63,956 nt of DNA, filler included, from Platydemus manokwari (GCA_037951405.1; 5 parts of 5 records of this genome joined end to end with filler, not necessarily neighbours in it), one strand, 5' to 3'. Numbered from the whole stretch's first letter, positions 21,704 through 33,475 are shown. Notes: a model not told the origin generated them from the sequence alone. Made by a program: numbers and translations.

Positions 21704-21965
21704 AAATTTTATATTAAATATTATATTAATTTGTTTATAATTGCATTTAATATATAATTTAGTGTAGTGACTTTTCAGGTCGCTTTTAACGCGTATTTTA
21801 TGAAACAGCAGTGGCTTACAATTAGAATATTAGTTAGAATGTGAATTAATATTTGAAATGAATGAAGGGTCCTATTTGATGAAATTAATATTACACAATA
21901 TCCATAATCATGTTATATAGCTTCATTTTCGTTTGTTCTACTGAGCCAGTTTAATTTTCTTTTCT

Positions 21966-23796
21966 ATGAAATTCAAAAACAGTGAAAATAAAATTATTGA
22001 AATCCCTGTTTTAAAGAATGACAACATCGTTAAGATTAAAATGGAACTTAGTAAGGTTACTAACATAAGTCCTAAGAAAATGAAATTAATTTTGGAATGC
22101 AATTTTTTAAATGATAATTCATTTATTAGCGATTTTGGTCAAATAAGTTTGCCTATAATTTATTGCTATGATACTTCAGATACGCCAAAGTGAATATTTT
22201 TTTAATATTTTTGCCTAAAATAATTTTATCAATAGCATAATCTTAAAAGTTCAAGGCTGCGAAGGACTCCCTGAATATATCCAAATTGATCATAACCATG
22301 CAGTGAAAGATATTAAAGATATTTTACAAAATGTTTGTCATAGTTATGATAATAATTATTTTATTTATAATAATGCTGGTGATCGTCTTCACGATGGTAG
22401 TGTTTTGAGCGAAATTGGTTTAGTTGATTATTCGATAATTTTGGTTTATCATGAGTAAGTCAAAATAATTTCATTGATTAAAAAAATCGATAAAGATATT
22501 TAATTGAAATTGATTTTTAAATGTGTTTACAGATCACATTTAGATGGTCGGTTATCATTAGAACCTATGCTTCGAAATCATGAAACAATACAAGTTAATT
22601 ACTGTATAGAAGACAGCATTGAAATTTTGAAAGCGAATATATCGGAACTAATCAAACACAATGTGGATAGTTTCGTCTTGTTTTACGATGATGTTTGTTT
22701 GGATGACAGCAGGAAATTATTGCATTATTCCCTGAAAAAAATTCCTTTCACAATATCTTATGTTCTCCTTCTGAGGTGACATTTTTAATGGCTTTTCTCT
22801 CCATTAACATGGTTGAAAATCGTTTGTAGTTTGACTGATTTAGAAGATCCACATTTTATCGCTCGTGGGAGAATCGCTAAGATTTATACATACAAAACTC
22901 GCACGACTGATGAAATTTTCGCTGTCAAGCGATACCATTTGACAGACCAAGGCAAATTGCAAAATTTCCAAGCAGTTATCAAGGAAATGATTCATATTTC
23001 ATATTTGCAAGATCATGACAACATTATTCGAATACTGAATTACTATAAAAATGAAAAACATTTCTTTATCGCCATGGAGTTTTTGAATCAGGTTAATTGG
23101 TTTCACTGTTCAATTATTCTCCATTCATTCTATGTTTTCATCTGATAGCGATCTCTCCGAGATTATCTCGACACCAATGACAAACGACCTTTGCCGGAAA
23201 GTCGTATTTTACCCATATGCAAAAAAGTGCTTCTTGGTCTGGAATTCATTCATTCTCGGAAAGTAATCCACTGTGACATCAAATGTTCGCACGTACTTCC
23301 ATTTGAATTTTGAAATTTTATCGTTTGTAGGCAGCAAAATTCTTCTCGGACAAAATGACAGCATCAAGATTTCTGGATTTGGTTTGTCGAAATATTTACG
23401 AGATTACGACAGCGATAATATTTTGAGCGGTATTCAAACAAAGGAAGGCTCTCGTAACTTCTTGTACAATTGGACAGCTCCAGAAATCATTGCTAGAGAG
23501 CCATTTGGAACAAAGGTTGACATTTGGTCATTTGGTGCAATGGTAATCGAATTGGTTACAGGTTTTATCGTGTTTCATTATTTCCGTGTTGACACTCTTC
23601 AGGTTACCCACCATATTGGAAATTGCACCATTTTGAACTCCTCAAAAAAGTCACACAAGATAGAACGATTTTCTATCAACCAACACAGCCAATCTCTGAC
23701 GGACTTTCAGATTTCATTGGTGCTTGTCTTCAGCATGCTGATCAGCGCCCAACAGCCAGTAGTCTCGTCAACCACGATTTTCTTGCTATCCGGTGA
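21966..23796 (+). CDS. Three tandem ubiquitin-like domains fused to a STE/MAP3K-like protein (pseudo)kinase, ~502 aa, 7 exons
   Basis: Exons 21966-22189, 22236-22454, 22533-22775, 22830-23091, 23149-23284, 23331-23561, 23603-23796 are all GT-AG and give one continuous frame of 1509 nt. Exons 1-3 each read as a UBL (D.I..IK..L...KLI..C..L.D). Kinase motifs: FAVK, KE, HCDIKCSK, SGFG, WTAPE, DIWSFG, QRPTA. An additional upstream exon cannot be excluded. Confidence 0.85.
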
Positions 23797-25502
23797 CATG
23801 CAAACAGTATTGATTTGCCAAGTGCTTGTGTGTGTATTACGTGATTGTGAACACATTAGTGATTAATTGAAAATTTTGAAGAAAAATATATTTTCGGTTT
23901 TATTAAACTTTATAATATCTATGATCGAGTCTGGCAATTTTGCTTGGATTTCTTTAGCTTCCTGGTTAAATAATTTATGCATGCAACGGTGCTTCCGACT
24001 TTTCCCTGTATCTTAAAAAATATATAATTAATTTAGAAAATCATTTGTATTACTTTAAATCAATTTTTACATAATATGAACGCGCTCACTCAATTATTCT
24101 AACTGTCGTTAATCCAATTACAATTATTCAATAAACACTAAATTATGTATGTTACTGATGCTTGATAAAATAATTACTTTTTTGTTTATTCGATTTAATT
24201 TTTTTTATTTATCAATTTTAACACTATAATTTTTATTAAAAATAGTATTTTATATATAAAATTTAACATAATCATTGTTTTTGTTTATTAAAGTAAATAT
24301 TTTATTAATCACAGTTAAGATAATTATTACTTTAATTATTTGTTTTAATATTATTTTTGTTTATTTATTATAGTTAATATTTTTTTATCTTTATTATATA
24401 ATAACATTTTAATCACATTTATTAATTTTATTTATTTTGAATTTATTTTATCAATGAGATTAATTTTTATTTCAAAATAAATCAGCTTTTTTCATTTTTT
24501 ATTCATAATTGACCTAAAATTTTAAAAAAAAGATCAAGAATGTGCAATGTTTGGATTCCACAATTTCAAAATCATTGTTGCATTTCTCAGCATTAGTTAG
24601 CGTTAGTTCGTGCTGTTTTGATTGGTGTTAAAATTTCATTTGTTGAGTTGAAGTAATTTTCGTTTATAAATTTATCAGTGTGTACGTCGGTGTGATCTAC
24701 CTGTTCAAATTACCATTGTGATCGTAGCTCGCACCAGTATTCCACTCTTAATCTGTAATTTTTGGTGGACTGCCAAATTAATGAATGATGCCTGTGAAAA
24801 ATTAAAGTCAATATAATGATTAGTTTTTCTCCAATAAAATTTAAAATTACAGATATTTTCTTATCTTCTGCACGTTGTCATCGAAACAATAGTAGTGAAT
24901 TTCAATACTAACTTACCCTTTGTTTCTTTTTTCAGTAAACATTAGAAATATACTTTTTTCGTAGGCTATTAGATATCAATTTGGATCATAATGGTCATAT
25001 TCTATTAAAATTATCTCATATGAGTTATGAATAACAAAGATTTCATAATTTTACATATGGATTTTAGTAAGTTAGCTCTTTAAAATTATGTCCTTCTTTG
25101 TGTCCGAGTTTTGTGTTAACTTTAAGCTTTAATTCATAGTGCAATCTACATGAAACACTAGTAAATTGATCTATTTGAATCTTGTTTCTAACATCCTTTG
25201 CCTGGATGTGAGCTGTTTGTAGAGAGTCTGACCATTTATACAATTTCCTATGTAATTCCCATTTGATATATAATTTAATAAAAAAGTTTTCGGAAAAACC
25301 TTATGAAAAATATTTTATCTATCTAAATCAAAAAAACATCTCGAAAATAATAACAATAAATAACGAAATGAATTCATATAATAATGAAATTCACATTGTT
25401 CATTATAAAATAAAAATTCACACTAAAATATAAATTCATAATATAAAAATCAATTAATTTGAAAAAGTGTATTAAAATAATATCCTGAAAATGATCCATC
25501 AC

Positions 25503-26060: not shown

Positions 26061-26884
26061 GAATCTAATAAAATTTTAAAATTCTTAAATAAATATTGAA
26101 ACATTAAAATACAATTAAAAGTTAAGATTCTTCAAGAAAATACAAATGGAAATGATTATATTACAATAAAAATAAGATCAAATCAAAATTAAACAACAAG
26201 AAATTAATGAAAATCATTAATTAGAAATTATTGAAGGTTTCTAATAAAAATTACATGATTATTTAATGGACGTTTTAGGAAGATGTTGGAATATATCCGA
26301 ATTAGAAATAATAAAAATAAATATTTCAGAGGTAAATTAATTATCTGAAAGAAGTTATTTATCTTTATTGTTTAATTAATAATTTAATTAGAGCTTAAAA
26401 TTATGATGACAAATAATTTATTTGCTAAATAGGCTGGCTTATAGAAAGGGTTAATGTGATTTTACGTCACATTAATCTCAAACAAACTCAATTGTTGGAT
26501 AAAGTAAATAAGTCCCAATATCCAACCTACATATGTTGATAATGAAAAGAAATTACAGCGATATAACTACGAATAATCTTCAATACACATAATACACATC
26601 GACTCAATCAGTTCTTGTGCCAATAGCCAATCAGATGCTTCCAAAATGGCAATCTATACATCGAATTTGATTATCAATTTCCACACATGAACAAAAGCAG
26701 TATACACTAAGATAAGTCAATGGTACGGGAGTTAGAAGAGAACTCATTAACAAACTGATAGAATCTAGTAACAAACTTAGTTATTTTAGTGAATAGAAAT
26801 GGTTCAGCCAACAGACAAAAAGACGCAGGAATAAAGAAATCAGATTATACAACAAATTAAAAATAATTATTTTAAAGTTTCTAT

Positions 26885-29800
26885 GTTTTACCGTATCAAT
26901 TTTATGCTTAAATATGCATACTGTATGCATTTCATCGCTAATTTTTGGATGATTTGATGACTAAGTACCGATTTTCGTAGAATTCCATCATTTAACTTCA
27001 CCTATGTTCTGAGCACGCACACGATCAAAATCTGAAGTTCGGCCGTGAATTTTAGCATGTTCTTTTTGACCTCTTTTTTGAGAGTGTTGTTCTTGGCGAG
27101 GTTTTCCTGATTTGCTTCATCAATTAGCCTTGGCTCGTCCATGGGGCATTTGATGTCAATTAACATGATGGTATATTTTCTGTCATTTGTAAGTCCACTC
27201 TTAGGTTGGAATTGGAAAATTGACATTTCTGATCTATAAGGATTCTATAATCGGTATGATATTCCACACACTTTGCTACAATATCCATAAGTTCATTGTG
27301 CGTAAAAGTTAAAAACTAGTTAGATGGTTTATACACTGTGAAAATGTGTGTCTGTGATTTCGTTGGGTACCGACATTTAGTGCACACCATTCGGCTCATG
27401 TATTTTTTATTCAAGGTCTGTAAGGTATCCGTTTTGGCTTTGTGGATGAATTCGAACTCTGCAATTGTTAAGTAGTCATGGAATACTGTCTTGCTCCACA
27501 TAGAGCTAACCGTACTACATAAGATATTGTATCGCCGACTTCTGATTGGTTCATTCCATTGGATTTGATACGATTGAATGAAACACCGTCGAAGAAGTTT
27601 TGGAGCTTGTTTAATATTCTTGGTTCCACTGTCGCTATTTTTGTATAACTAAGACCATTAGAGCTGATATTTTGATCGATTCTGAGCATGTGGGCATCAT
27701 TGATTGTCTCAAAGCAAGCAACTGTGTGGAGTTTATTCGATACATATTTGATAGCCTCATGGACTTTGCTCCACCAATTTTTGCTTCTGCGAGTCTCATA
27801 AATGTGGGAGTTCATCCAATTGAGTGCGTCGTTGATGTCATTGACCTCTATTTCAATTTTAACTGATTAACATAGAGTGCACTGCTGTCAGTTTGATAAC
27901 ATCATGCTTGCTCGTGAGGAGATAGTAGCCATGGATTATTGATTGAATTGTAAAACCTTCTGTCATATGGCTTAGACCGCGTCCCCATTAGCTTTGAAGG
28001 TATATAAGTAATTTGTACAGCAATATTTTGGTACACTCAGTATTTTCTTCCGGTATTTTATTAAGAGATTTTATTATTAGCCAATAATAATGCACCCATT
28101 CGATTTTTATTCATCTTGACAAGAATCGGTTAATTGAATTATTGAATAACAACATTGATATTGGGCAACCTTGACGAACCCCACGTTTCTTTTCGATCGA
28201 ACACGTCTCATAATCTCCACATTTTAACGTTGTTGTATAGGCATTTGATCATTTTTATAGCATTTTCAACAAGGCTCATGTATACCAATATTTCCATCAT
28301 TGTTGTGATGTTTATTGAAGAAAAGGCCTCCTCAATATCCATCAATGAGATGTGAATGTCATCTTTTCCTTTCCTTGAATAATTTTCTAACATAGCTCGA
28401 AGAATAAAGTTGTGCTCCGCACACCCATCAGTTGGCCCTAGACTCTTTTGCAATGGATGAATTATGTTGTTCTCATCGATCCAACTCCGAAGTTGTTGGC
28501 ATAGGATTGTTTTTAGTATTTTGTAATCATAATCCTGGAGTGCGATCGGTCTCCATGATCCGACCCTGTCAAATTCACGTTCTTCATCGGTTTAGGGATC
28601 ATGATCGTAGAATATGTTTTCCATTCTTCAGGAATTCCATTTAGCTCCATGTAATTATCAAATAGTACTTTCAATAATTCACAGTTTGAGTCGGCATAAG
28701 ATATTGTTCTTTCCCGGAGCTGTTGAATCCTTTTGACGTAAAATTTTATAAATTGTTTCAATGTCGATAATTCAAAATGAGAATTTTGAGCCTCTGTTCG
28801 TATACCTTTTTAATTCACAGAATTCATTGCATTGAGTCACATAGGGTCTAATATATTATGGTAATTTCAATGGATCGACTTGTTTGTTTCTGTAATGTAT
28901 TTCGAAGTCTTCCTTTTTTGCCCAAGTATTTGCATGAGTAGATTTGGTATTTATTCCAAAAGCAGCTGATGGGGCGATATTGAACAAATTTCGAAGTTTC
29001 ATATCTGTTTTACCATTTCTATTTCTTTTGTTGCTTTACCGAAGAATGGATGCCCTGGTGGTCTAATCACTGTCATAGTTCTGATAAATTCGCAGATGCT
29101 TTTATATGTCTCGTTTAATGAATCTTTCACAAAGTTATTTGCCAGATTGTGAGCCAGACTTTACCTGATCTGAATTGTATCTTTTGGAGCATCTTTAGCA
29201 ATAGCTAGGAGTTGTTCACCTTTCATCGTTCGTTTTTGATGATCAATAATCGCTTCGTTGGCATTCACCTTAATTGCCGTTGTATTAATTCGGAACATAT
29301 TACTATTTTTGCAAGTATTGGGTATATACCCGAAGACCAGTGGTCCGCTTTCTCCAAAGTTTATTTGCAACGCTCTGTTGTGGTTAGCCTCGACGATATT
29401 AAATCCTTTTTTATTCCATACTAGAATTGAGAGATTTTCATTTACGTTATTTTGTATACTTGTCTTCTCATCGTACTTCGAGTTCCCTTCTGGATCAAGT
29501 TTTATTATTATGTTCGTTATAATGTCTGACATCACTAATATCTATTTATTACACTTCGTCAGTAATGAGCAGAAGATAATCTCTCTATTGTTAAAATATT
29601 TAAAGGATAGGAATTCCTTGATTTCTTCTGTGTTGTGATTGGCAAGCGCTTTACTCAGAAACGGATCTAGAACCAGAAACCTTCGGCTTATAATCTCTCT
29701 CCTAGATTGTACGATTATATGCTTATCTGTGTATAGTAGGTGGTCATATTAGTATTTGGTGATTTGCATTTGTTCTGAATGATCACCTCCAACATTACTT

Positions 29801-31350
29801 GGTTTACTCCAGTCTCTCTCAGTTTCTGATATAACCTCGATTCGAATGTCTATGGCATTGATTTCATTGATATTGCGATTGTTGGAAGATTTACTGCATA
29901 ACCTCAAACGAAGGGTCCACAGTCAACATTGTCTTTCTAACATTGTTTTGACTGGTAAATATGAGGAAGGCTTAGTACTGAATTATTCTATCCTTCGAAC
30001 TGTTTAATAAAATCTATTAGTTTGTTCGATTTGATCGAGACACTGAGTATGAAAGCCATGTTATCTTCCATTGGATCAATGATTTCCTTCCCATTATCTT
30101 TGTTTCCGATCAGCAGTGACCAATGAGTATTATTCATATTGATAGGAGTCTGAAAGGTTTTGTACTATGCTCAGTGTTTGTTGGCATATCATTGAGTGTG
30201 AAATATCAAATTAGTGGACAACAATGCATTCAGTAATATATGATTGGAGATAGAATATTTCATCTGGTATTCGGTTTTTAATGTAATTGTTAATTTCGTA
30301 ACCGGAAAATCAAGAACAATACGGATTGTCATGCAATGGGGGGGTCATATTTTGAAGCACTGGTTTCACTTTCAGTGCTATCCATCAATTATGTTCGGGG
30401 TCAGTTAACAACTGGATTTTATCGTGGAACATATTGGCCTTTTTTCCTTTGATTGGACTCAATTGGATCCTTATTGGAGTTGACGTTCTTATTCTTTGAC
30501 TTGGACTGGTAAATAGTTCTCTGGATTTTCTGCTTCTCCTTGTATCCGTTGAGAGGTCAATACTTTCAATGCTTTGATCTGGTTGTTTGTCTCCATCGAT
30601 AGTTGGAATCTTGGAGTTGTTCATTATTTCTTTGAGTTTGCATTAGTGGAGATTGACTTGCCGGATTTGTCAATATCAACATCATTATTTGGATTTATGG
30701 TATTATCGAGTTTGTTCGTGTTGTCTTTCTTTTCCTTTCCTTTTCCTCATTTTTCGTTGCCTTTTCACTATCGTTTCTTTTGAGGCTCTTCCATTCTTTC
30801 TACTTTTATATTTTTCCTTTGATGTTTACGTTTCTTGTATCTGACTTCTTGAAAGCCATCATCATCAATTAGTTTGGGTCTAATTTTCTGTTTATCATTT
30901 CTTTGTTTATATTCATTCGATTTTATATTAAATTCCATTGCGTCAGCATATGATCTGGGTTTCGATTTTTTCCTTTATCGTGACCAGGATTCATCATATC
31001 TGGTTCTTGATTTTGACTGTCCCTGTCTCTGTGCCTACTCACTTACGATCTTTGCCAGGTCCGACTTTTCTGTGATTTTCAAAATTTTGACCTTTTTGGC
31101 ATCTCGGACCTCGGATCGCTTTTAAATGACTATTTCTGGGGACTGGCGGTATACAACCTGTCATCCTTGTTGAGAACTCTTTTTTCCTGTACAACCTTCT
31201 CGGTTGCCTCGCCTGCCCGGAAAATTTTGGTTTTTCCCTCCAGGTAAGTTTAGATTTTCCACCATAAAAAAATTTAGGTTGTTTGGAAAACCGCTCTGAG
31301 TGTCTCCTGGGACTGGGAGCATAATTAGTCCCGTCATCTCACTGAGCATA
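26885..31350 (-). mobile_element. Degenerate NeSL-clade-like RLE non-LTR retrotransposon with Ulp1-like cysteine protease, RT, CCHC-like motif and restriction-like endonuclease
   Basis: Minus-strand order: Ulp1-like motifs (FSGYEINNYI, PINMNNTHWSLLIG, DNVDCGPFV at 30320-29900); RT motifs GIPEEWK..TIMIPK, GCAEHNFIL, MDIEEAFSSI, RGVRQGCPIS (YADD region deleted); CTKC...THI and IMLIDIKCPMD. Many stops and frameshifts. Confidence 0.85.
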
Positions 31351-31785
31351 CTCTTTTTTAAATCCTTGATAAGTCTAATATAAAATTGAGAAAGTGCAAA
31401 AGCATTATAGCGCTTAATTTTTATGTAGTTTAATCCCAGTGGTTTCATAATTATAAACTGTAATTAATATAACTGAGTTTGTACCAGACATTAAAATCTT
31501 AATTTGTCACGACTTTTAATGGAATTTATTTAATGACATCTATAATATAAAATCAGTTTTCGCAAATATTTTTAATGAATAAAAAGAATTCAAATTTTCT
31601 AAAATATTCTTAAATAACTGCAATATCAGGGAAAACAAATACCACAATGGAATCCCACAAATCCAGTAAAGATTAGTACAAAATACAATCAATATAAATC
31701 ACTGACAAAAATGTCAATAAATCAAGAACCAAAACAACAAGACGATATTTAATTATGGTACAAACATGAAAAATCTGGACAAAAA

Positions 31786-33475
31786 TCACTCGCTGAAACT
31801 CTCGTCGTCTGAAATGATTCTCGCTTTCTTTCCTTTCTTTTTCGGTGGCGGATCGGAAAACTAAAAAATAAAAAATCCTCAGAATTTATAAGCAGCCAGA
31901 TGTTTTAAAATTCCACTAAAAACTGCTTAGCAACGCATTCCAAGGGTTCCTTAATTAATCGATCTAAATACTTACATCGCTCATTGAATCGTCTTCTTCT
32001 TCGTCAGTAGAAGACATATCGATCGTTCCTAAACCAATGTATCGATATTAGTTTTCTTTCAAATTAGAACAAACTTTTCTTTTTTATGGAGGAACTCGGC
32101 CTTGCTTTCTTCTTGATATCTGAAATCGAAATTGCGTGGGGATTAGTTTCGTCGTCTTTCTGTTGTTCGAGAAATGCAGCAGTCAATTCTTTGTGACTCG
32201 CTCTTTCTAACATGCGTCGACGTTGATTTTCGCGTCGGAGAGAAACTTTCATTCGTTCTTCTTCGCGCTTGATCATTTCCTGTTGGCGCACATCGGGGTT
32301 CTCTCCAGCAAATGGCAACAATTTCACTTTGGCTGCTTTGTGCGTTTTGTCGGCCAACGACAAAGTGAGCTTACGATGCGTGAATGAATCTGTCGAGTGC
32401 GGCCGGAAAGCAAGCTTGCTCGAAAACACGGCCTGAGCCTGAAGCCCACTACCTTCACGCACAAACAAATGGTTGTGATCGGCACTAATATCCATGGTAT
32501 GGACATCAAATATTTCCCGACCAAGATGTAATGACAAGCTTCCGTCAGACCATCGAACCATTCTAGCATTACTCTCTCGAATAGGTTGATCATTGGCATC
32601 CAACAGTGGTTGGCCCTCACCATCTCGAGCTACACGCCATCTAATAGTATTTTCCACTTTCAATTTCAATCTCGTCCGACCTTCTTCGTCTTGAACCTCT
32701 GATTCATCCATTTCATCTTCATAATACATTGGATCGAAAGGCCTCGTTTCGACAGACAAGAAATTTGGCAATTTAACAAGATGCATCTCTCTAATATTAA
32801 GATATTGTACCTCAAAATTTTTAAAAAATCTGTTTAATACTCTCCAAGATCAGCTTTAATAACCGGGAAATCCACCTCAATAGCTCCGTCGTCGCCGACC
32901 TCATCCACATCACCTTCAACTTGAGCATGATCTGATTCGAATGGCATTCGATACATCTGATTACCTTCTCCACCAGACTAAGCAACAAATCATCAATATT
33001 TCATCAGATTTGGAACAGGACAATATTTTACACATTATCAAGAATTATTACTTCTTCACTAGCTTCCATTATATCTTTTATATTATGTCGATTTTTATCT
33101 TTAACTTTATCTTCATCTTCTATGACGCTTGATTATGTTTTTTAATATCTACAAAAATTATTATCTACCTGTATCACTACCAAAAACATCCTTTTGAGTT
33201 AAATTTACATCATCTGAATCATCACTTTCATTCGAATCCAATCCCAAACTTTTTGCCGTGAGATTATTATTTGTAATTTCTACATCCGAATCATCGCCTG
33301 AACTTAATTGTTTATTTTTATTTCTGGTTGATTTTTCAACATAGCTATCTGAAGAATCGTCACTTATCTCTGTTAGTACAAAATAAGTTCAGTGAAATAA
33401 TAAAATCTTCAAACCTATTTTGCGACTACTAAATTTTTCCGTTTTAATATTTTGATCTTCTGAATCAGAACTCAT
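31786..33475 (-). CDS. LEO1: RNA polymerase II-associated PAF1 complex subunit Leo1, ~436 aa, 7 exons
   Basis: Diagnostic [21 protein letters not shown]...[13 protein letters not shown]...[19 protein letters not shown]...[20 protein letters not shown]. Exons 33415-33475, 33169-33369, 33052-33119, 32841-32977, 32075-32790, 31976-32028, 31786-31860 splice in frame (1311 nt). Confidence 0.93.

Follow-up and report, generated by a model that had tools for sequence, protein, structure and literature searches.

The window, meaning the whole stretch of 63,956 nucleotides analyzed here, is AT-rich, with a GC content of 0.23-0.42 in 1-kb windows. Its plus strand carries, between positions 21966 and 23796, a gene of seven exons that join into a 1509-nt coding sequence of 502 codons without an internal stop (three-frame translation of 21900-23900). 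The first three exons each encode a ubiquitin-like (UBL) module, and the remaining four encode a kinase domain (Table 1). The introns measure 46, 78, 54, 57, 46, and 41 nt from first to last, and all six have GT..AG ends. Since introns 1-3 are each in phase 2, exons 2 and 3 are symmetric and each form a self-contained module. The only unusual splice signal is the weak donor of intron 5, which was picked by reading frame. The strand opposite the gene held no ORF of at least 60 aa, a second copy of the gene was not found elsewhere in the window, and an Rfam scan of the whole window gave no match. We note that database searches, family scans, and structure predictions were run with single exons or with two database proteins (P0001 and P0002, described below), and that the joined 502-aa model was used only for pairwise alignment, local tblastn, and the tree.

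Table 1. Features of the gene and its surroundings, with positions counted from the first letter of the window
Feature	Position	Strand	Description
Exon 1	21966-22189	+	Start codon (ATG at 21966) and UBL1; Pfam ubiquitin PF00240, 29.2 bits, residues 2-57 on profile 2-57
Exon 2	22236-22454	+	UBL2, phase-2 introns on both sides; predicted structure
Exon 3	22533-22775	+	UBL3, adjoins the kinase directly; Pfam ubiquitin E 2.6e-4 and predicted structure
Exon 4	22830-23091	+	Kinase N-lobe; Pkinase E 3.9e-11, profile 7-81
Gly loop, ARGRIA	22861-22878	+	First Gly to Ala, second Gly kept, third Gly to Ala against the MAP3K2/3 alignment
beta3 Lys (AVK)	22927-22929	+	Present
alphaC Glu	22984-22986	+	Present
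Exon 5	23149-23284	+	alphaD-alphaE and start of catalytic loop; Pkinase E 3.3e-7, profile 84-125
Catalytic loop, HCDIK	23269-23283	+	Asp and Lys kept, Arg to Cys; the next C is a split codon
Intron 5 donor, GTTCGC	23285	+	Weak
Exon 6	23331-23561	+	End of catalytic loop, GFG, long activation segment, APE, alphaF DIWSFG; Pkinase E 5.3e-12, profile 129-192
S-K of HCDIKCSK	23333-23338	+	Lys (23336-23338) replaces the Mg-binding Asn
GFG in place of DFG	23375-23383	+	Asp lost
APE	23477-23485	+	Present
Exon 7	23603-23796	+	Kinase C-lobe, alphaG to subdomain XI Arg, and stop; Pkinase E 0.024, profile 215-263
Stop codon, TGA	23794-23796	+	End of coding sequence
ATTAAA	23902		3' of the stop codon
Low-complexity stretch	24100-24520		~400 nt downstream of the gene, GC ~0.15-0.2, many short T/A-rich repeats
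GC-richer block	26500-32900		GC 0.34-0.42 against ~0.25 in the flanks; several broken ORFs of 80-125 aa
ORFs in the GC-richer block	27468-27815, 28208-28453, 28513-28761, 29161-29535	mainly -	Reverse-transcriptase-like motifs by eye
Leo1 ORF	32064-32786	-	Single 240-aa ORF, Leo1 domain of the Paf1 complex (Pfam PF04004, 174 bits)

Two further parts of the window drew our attention. The closest database protein to the Leo1 ORF is 95% identical and comes from a Logan contig, and its named relatives are from animals. In a small tree, the window sequence grouped with trematode, cestode, and monogenean Leo1 proteins (100/98 support) on long branches. The host of the gene is thus an animal and probably a flatworm, or else another spiralian that evolves fast. 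The broken ORFs of the GC-richer block contain, by eye, motifs resembling reverse transcriptase (IPKP... and ...MDIEEAFSSI...), and the ORF pieces had no Pfam match at E <=0.01. The motifs suggest that the block is a decayed non-LTR retrotransposon.

Relatives and the splice model

Close relatives of the gene are very rare in the collections that we searched. An HMMER search with exon 4 against 1.84 billion cluster representatives returned only two close relatives, with none at E <1e-30, and both are ~46% identical to the window protein across the whole protein. The first, P0001 (UniParc UPI0005FF39FA, 339 aa), joins UBL3 to the kinase in a gene model without the catalytic-loop piece. The second, P0002 (436 aa), is encoded by L001, a 1561-nt Logan contig of SRR21676451, in which UBL2, UBL3, and the entire kinase lie in a single uninterrupted ORF. 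No further family members were recovered by a word search with P0002, a profile search with P0001 and P0002, or one scan of metagenome contigs, in which the matches were generic kinases of 24-30% identity, with one short segment at 50%. The original prediction had described the gene as lineage-specific, and the near absence of relatives in these searches agrees with that description.

Comparison with L001 also bears on the exon structure. Upstream of its ORF, the contig has coding sequence for the last 44 residues of a UBL1. Between this piece and the ORF lies a GT..AG stretch of 41 nt (L001 133-173) whose position and phase are identical to those of intron 1 in the window gene. The MFVI with which P0002 begins is therefore translated from this intron. 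Over 464 residues, the window model is 45% identical to the spliced L001 product, with no gaps at junctions 2-6. At the weak donor of intron 5, the window model (HCDIKC|SK) is colinear with HCDIKCAS in the intron-less ORF of L001, which backs the choice of this donor. This alignment is the strongest check that we have on the splice model. The seven-exon frame that had been predicted is supported, with exact coordinates and canonical intron ends throughout.

Of the six introns, L001 has only the equivalent of intron 1. The contig may be a transcript with one retained intron, or else five introns were lost there or gained in the lineage of the window. We also observed a 5'-to-3' GC gradient common to both sequences. 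In the window gene, exon GC climbs from 0.25 to 0.44 along the gene, and in L001 (160-1470) third-position GC rises from 31% to 76% and is then 54% in the last stretch.

Identity to the relatives extended through every part of the protein. The C-terminal 44 aa of UBL1 are 37% identical to L001:2-136, UBL2 is 39% identical to P0002:8-82, UBL3 is 47-50% identical to its equivalents, and the kinase is 32-57% identical by exon, with exon 7 at 43% to the C-terminus of P0002. By these comparisons, the degree of conservation is similar in all domains.

An unusual domain combination of this kind could be a gene-model artefact, with UBL and kinase exons drawn from different genes, or a decaying pseudogene, and its odd kinase motifs could stem from decay or assembly error. 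The weak donor of exon 5 counts toward an artefact, as do the sequencing runs, among which no RNA run covered the gene and one DNA-like run matched only short low-complexity stretches. Against this reading stand the 502-codon frame, kept through seven exons without a stop, and the two relatives. Because L001 joins UBL2, UBL3, and kinase in one ORF, with a partial UBL1 upstream past an intron that matches intron 1 in position and phase, the UBL-kinase fusion is no annotation artefact, and P0001 likewise joins UBL3 to a kinase. In addition, the same degenerate kinase residues occur in species whose proteins are only ~46% identical. An artefact or pseudogene is already largely refuted by these observations, and we consider it highly improbable. 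We interpret the window gene, on its sequence, as a real and intact animal gene.

Ubiquitin-like modules

UBL1 scored above the Pfam gathering cut-off for ubiquitin (25.4 bits for PF00240), and a sequence search of the PDB with this module led to ubiquitin and NEDD8 chains. We assign it to the ubiquitin family by its Pfam profile. For UBL3, the Pfam ubiquitin match of the window module and those of its equivalents in P0001 and P0002 (E 8.7e-4 and 7e-3, respectively) were all sub-threshold. Its AF2 model (pLDDT 70) has the beta-grasp order of elements, and the best 50 Foldseek matches in the PDB were ubiquitin and its variants, ISG15, or ubiquitin-containing complexes, with TM 0.60-0.66, rmsd mostly ~2-2.5 A, and identity mostly 26-31%. 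The weak profile match and the predicted ubiquitin fold place UBL3 in the ubiquitin family.

UBL2 had no significant Pfam match, the best being Rad60-SLD at E 0.03. Its AF2 model (pLDDT 64) has the element order beta-beta-alpha-beta-beta-alpha-beta, and the best 50 Foldseek matches in the PDB were ubiquitin, ISG15, FAT10, SUMO, or ubiquitin-containing complexes (TM ~0.6, E ~0.01). We therefore call UBL2 ubiquitin-like by predicted structure only and with modest confidence, the weakest of the three assignments. We note that the AF2 models of UBL2 and UBL3 took orthologues as alignment input, and that the UBL2 model was made from two sequences.

All three modules lack a C-terminal Gly-Gly, which makes them integral UBLs rather than conjugatable modifiers. 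Their C-termini (...YDTSDTPN, ...ILVYHE, and ...YVLLLS) each continue straight into the next domain. The original prediction of three beta-grasp modules of ubiquitin type without a terminal Gly-Gly is borne out, by the Pfam cut-off for UBL1, by a weak Pfam match and a predicted ubiquitin-family fold for UBL3, and by a modest match of the predicted fold for UBL2. We found no significant pair when the three modules were compared with each other by hhalign (E 0.04-0.3), and the shared phase-2 introns are the one feature that hints at a shared origin of the modules through exon duplication.

The PB1 domain is also a beta-grasp fold. This favors another reading of the gene, as a diverged orthologue of MEKK2 or MEKK3 whose N-terminal modules are derived PB1 domains and which still takes part in a MEK5-type PB1 docking cascade. 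The modules themselves speak against it. At E up to 10, Pfam gave no PB1 match for any module of the window protein, P0001, or P0002, and the same scan recovered PB1 from the N-terminus of Octopus MAP3K2 at E 1.1e-10. PB1 structures were also absent from the best 50 Foldseek matches for UBL2 and UBL3, which were of the ubiquitin family with up to 31% identity. We reject a PB1 origin of the N-terminal modules on the Pfam scan, with its working control, and on the ubiquitin-family Foldseek matches of UBL2 and UBL3. The kinase domain provides further evidence on MEKK2/3 orthology, which we weigh below.

Kinase domain and its group

Exons 4-7 match consecutive segments of the Pkinase profile (PF00069; Table 1), and chance cannot account for four exons that are colinear on one profile. 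In the orthologue P0002, the match covers the whole domain (154 bits, profile 6-263). The full kinase fold in the original prediction is supported by this pattern, and its motif readings were correct on every point, including the altered ARGRIA, HCDIKCSK, and GFG as well as the retained beta3 Lys, alphaC Glu, catalytic Asp, and APE.

Kinases bind the two Mg ions of Mg-ATP through the catalytic-loop Asn and the DFG Asp. The window kinase has an incomplete canonical catalytic set, with a degraded Gly loop, Lys in place of the Asn, and GFG in place of DFG, and with the Lys, Glu, and Asp present. The DIWSFG motif and the subdomain XI Arg are kept along with APE, and the GT of the P+1 loop, just before APE, is replaced when compared with the MAP3K2/3 alignment. 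By sequence, a pseudokinase is defined by the absence of at least one of the beta3 Lys, the HRD Asp, and the DFG Asp (PMC13519141, PMC4718504), and the DFG Asp is missing from the window protein, P0001, and P0002.

These degenerate residues recur across the family. GFG lies within ISGFGLSKY, which is identical in all three proteins. The Gly loops of P0002 (VDEGRFAKIF) and P0001 (IDKGRYAKIY) keep the middle Gly alone and have Asp at the position of the first. The catalytic loop of P0002, HCDIKCAS, has Ser at the Asn position, and P0001 lacks that stretch. Since GFG and a degenerate Gly loop recur at ~46% identity, the pattern has been maintained in a functional gene and is not a product of decay or of an assembly error. 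We interpret the degenerate active site as a selected pseudokinase state.

Sequence searches placed the kinase in the STE group. When the PDB was searched with the kinase domain of P0002, the first 28 of the 60 chains listed were STE kinases (STK10, MAP3K2, OSR1, SLK, MST3, and PAK), and PLK2, PLK3, and Lyn were mixed with more STE chains below them. A search with the family profile gave only STE kinases in its best 60 chains, including PAK1 (149 bits), MST3 (136), MAP3K2 (136), TAO, and SLK. In a large protein collection, searched by words so that only candidates sharing exact words are scored, the best full-length matches after the family itself were all animal MAP3K2 or MAP3K3 (~32% identity, E 1e-24 to 1e-34, the lowest values with the profile of P0001 and P0002). 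A maximum-likelihood tree of the sequences on hand grouped the window protein, P0001, and P0002 as a clade (100/99) on a long branch. This clade was sister to a group formed by a fungal PAK-like kinase and MAP3K2/3, a placement with weak support (84/80) in a tree with one STE20 reference only. Exon-level PDB searches were too weak to assign a subfamily, and the whole-domain search, the profile search, and the tree split between STE11 and STE20.

We regard membership of the STE group as established by these comparisons, and membership of the MAP3Ks as not. The original label of STE/MAP3K-like therefore stands in its first half, given the best PDB matches. The second half is supported in part: MAP3K2/3 gave the best full-length matches, but PAK1 scored above MAP3K2 in the profile search and the tree, with its weak support, left the family outside MAP3K2/3.

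The same results bear on MEKK2/3 orthology. Likeness to MAP3K2 and MAP3K3 consists of an STE kinase with an N-terminal beta-grasp module, the best full-length matches outside the family, and motifs that look MEKK-like by eye (DIKxA.IL and FG.SK). However, MEKK2/3 combine a single PB1 domain and a long linker with a fully canonical active site (GxGxFG, HRD..N, and DFG), whereas the window family has three ubiquitin-family domains and has lost the Asn, the DFG Asp, and two glycines of the Gly loop. The linker of MAP3K2/3 is ~250 aa long, whereas UBL3 of the window family adjoins the kinase with no linker. With the profile scores and the tree also against it, we consider a diverged MEKK2/3 orthologue quite unlikely.

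Possible function and significance

We favor, with moderate confidence, the reading of the gene as lineage-restricted, encoding three non-conjugatable ubiquitin-family domains and an STE pseudokinase that is likely non-catalytic, may bind nucleotide in a metal-free manner, and would act as a docking or allosteric partner. The kinase domain is predicted to perform ordinary Mg-ATP phosphotransfer no longer. It may instead provide a docking or allosteric module to an active kinase of an STE pathway or to the substrate of that kinase, in the manner of STRADalpha or KSR, possibly with nucleotide bound in the absence of metal. The three UBLs would be docking surfaces to which ubiquitin-binding domains or partner kinases attach, or through which the protein associates with itself, as the ubiquitin-like domain of PKD does. 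The original prediction of a scaffold or cation-independent kinase that would connect ubiquitin or proteasome recognition with MAPK or immune signalling is a hypothesis.

Among known pseudokinases, STRADalpha, of the STE20 group, offers a comparison by residue pattern, which does not imply specific sequence kinship. Both have an STE-group fold without the DFG Asp and the catalytic-loop Asn, and the Asn is replaced by a basic residue in each, by His in STRADalpha and by Lys in the window kinase. STRADalpha needs no cation to bind ATP, for which it uses basic residues in place of the Asn and at the DFG position, and it activates its partner kinase LKB1 allosterically (PMC4718504). It differs in having also lost the beta3 Lys and the catalytic Asp (VTVR and HRS; PMC2639636), which are kept in the window family, and in having no UBLs.

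The retained residues allow for a different outcome. With the beta3 Lys, alphaC Glu, catalytic Asp, and catalytic-loop Lys all kept and conserved, nucleotide binding or catalysis could persist, and these residues favor an active, unconventional kinase of the CASK type, which would transfer phosphate without a divalent cation while the UBLs bring in substrates such as ubiquitin receptors. The Mg-binding Asn that is lost from the window kinase is also replaced in CASK. CASK, whose activity is Mg-independent (PMC2639636, PMC4718504), shares with the window kinase the change of DFG to GFG and has likewise kept the beta3 Lys and the catalytic Asp (PMC2639636). The Lys at the Asn position is also basic, comparable with the His that substitutes for a cation in STRADalpha (PMC4718504).

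The Gly loop counts against activity of this type. CASK, active with GFG, has an intact loop (GKGPFS; PMC2639636), whereas the window family keeps only the middle Gly, with Asp at the first position in two members. Residual activity is best predicted by an intact Gly loop together with the beta3 motif. In most pseudokinases the Gly loop is degraded and often contains acidic replacements, a pattern that goes with lost ATP binding or positioning (PMC2639636). VRK3, which combines GFG with a degraded loop, is inactive (PMC2639636). Moreover, P0002 has Ser where the window kinase has Lys for the Asn, so that this Lys is not conserved, and the replaced GT of the P+1 loop is a further point against. 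CASK also belongs to the CAMK group, unlike the STE kinase of the window family, and its Mg-free activity has been demonstrated. Two features of CASK, GFG and loss of the Asn, are therefore found in the window kinase and the third, an intact Gly loop, is not. We consider a CASK-type kinase unlikely and retain the pseudokinase with a docking or allosteric role as the preferred reading.

Other kinases also carry ubiquitin-fold modules in one chain with the kinase domain, and these serve in dimerisation or in intramolecular regulation. IKK and TBK1 carry a ubiquitin-like domain (ULD) after the kinase domain, and the type II PI4K-gamma proteins of plants and ciliates carry UBLs before a lipid kinase. 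PKD has an N-terminal ULD (PMC9962925). These proteins have one or two UBLs and are active kinases of other groups (CAMK, IKK-related, and lipid), and none has a tandem triple UBL array on an STE pseudokinase. In full-text literature searches, we found no tandem triple array of ubiquitin-family domains fused directly to an STE-group pseudokinase.

A bolder proposal combines a metal-independent STE kinase, still catalytic or nucleotide-sensing, with UBLs that dock it on ubiquitin receptors, for instance the proteasome or shuttle factors. We hold this combination to be very unlikely. If it were true, ubiquitin recognition would be tied directly to an STE/MAPK-type module in a flatworm-like lineage, a connection that has not been described before.

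Pseudokinases are well known, as are kinases with a single ubiquitin-fold domain. What appears to be new here is the tandem triple array of ubiquitin-family domains on an STE-group pseudokinase, an architecture that is very rare in current databases. We judge its value to be moderate, as a clear and testable new architecture that brings no new principle. At ~46% identity, the family members share both the kept residues (Lys, Glu, and Asp) and the losses (Asn, DFG Asp, and two Gly), so the family provides a natural test case for which kinase residues are important in roles that are non-catalytic or free of metal. If the host proves to be a flatworm or a related spiralian, the gene would be a lineage-specific signalling component relevant to the biology of that group.
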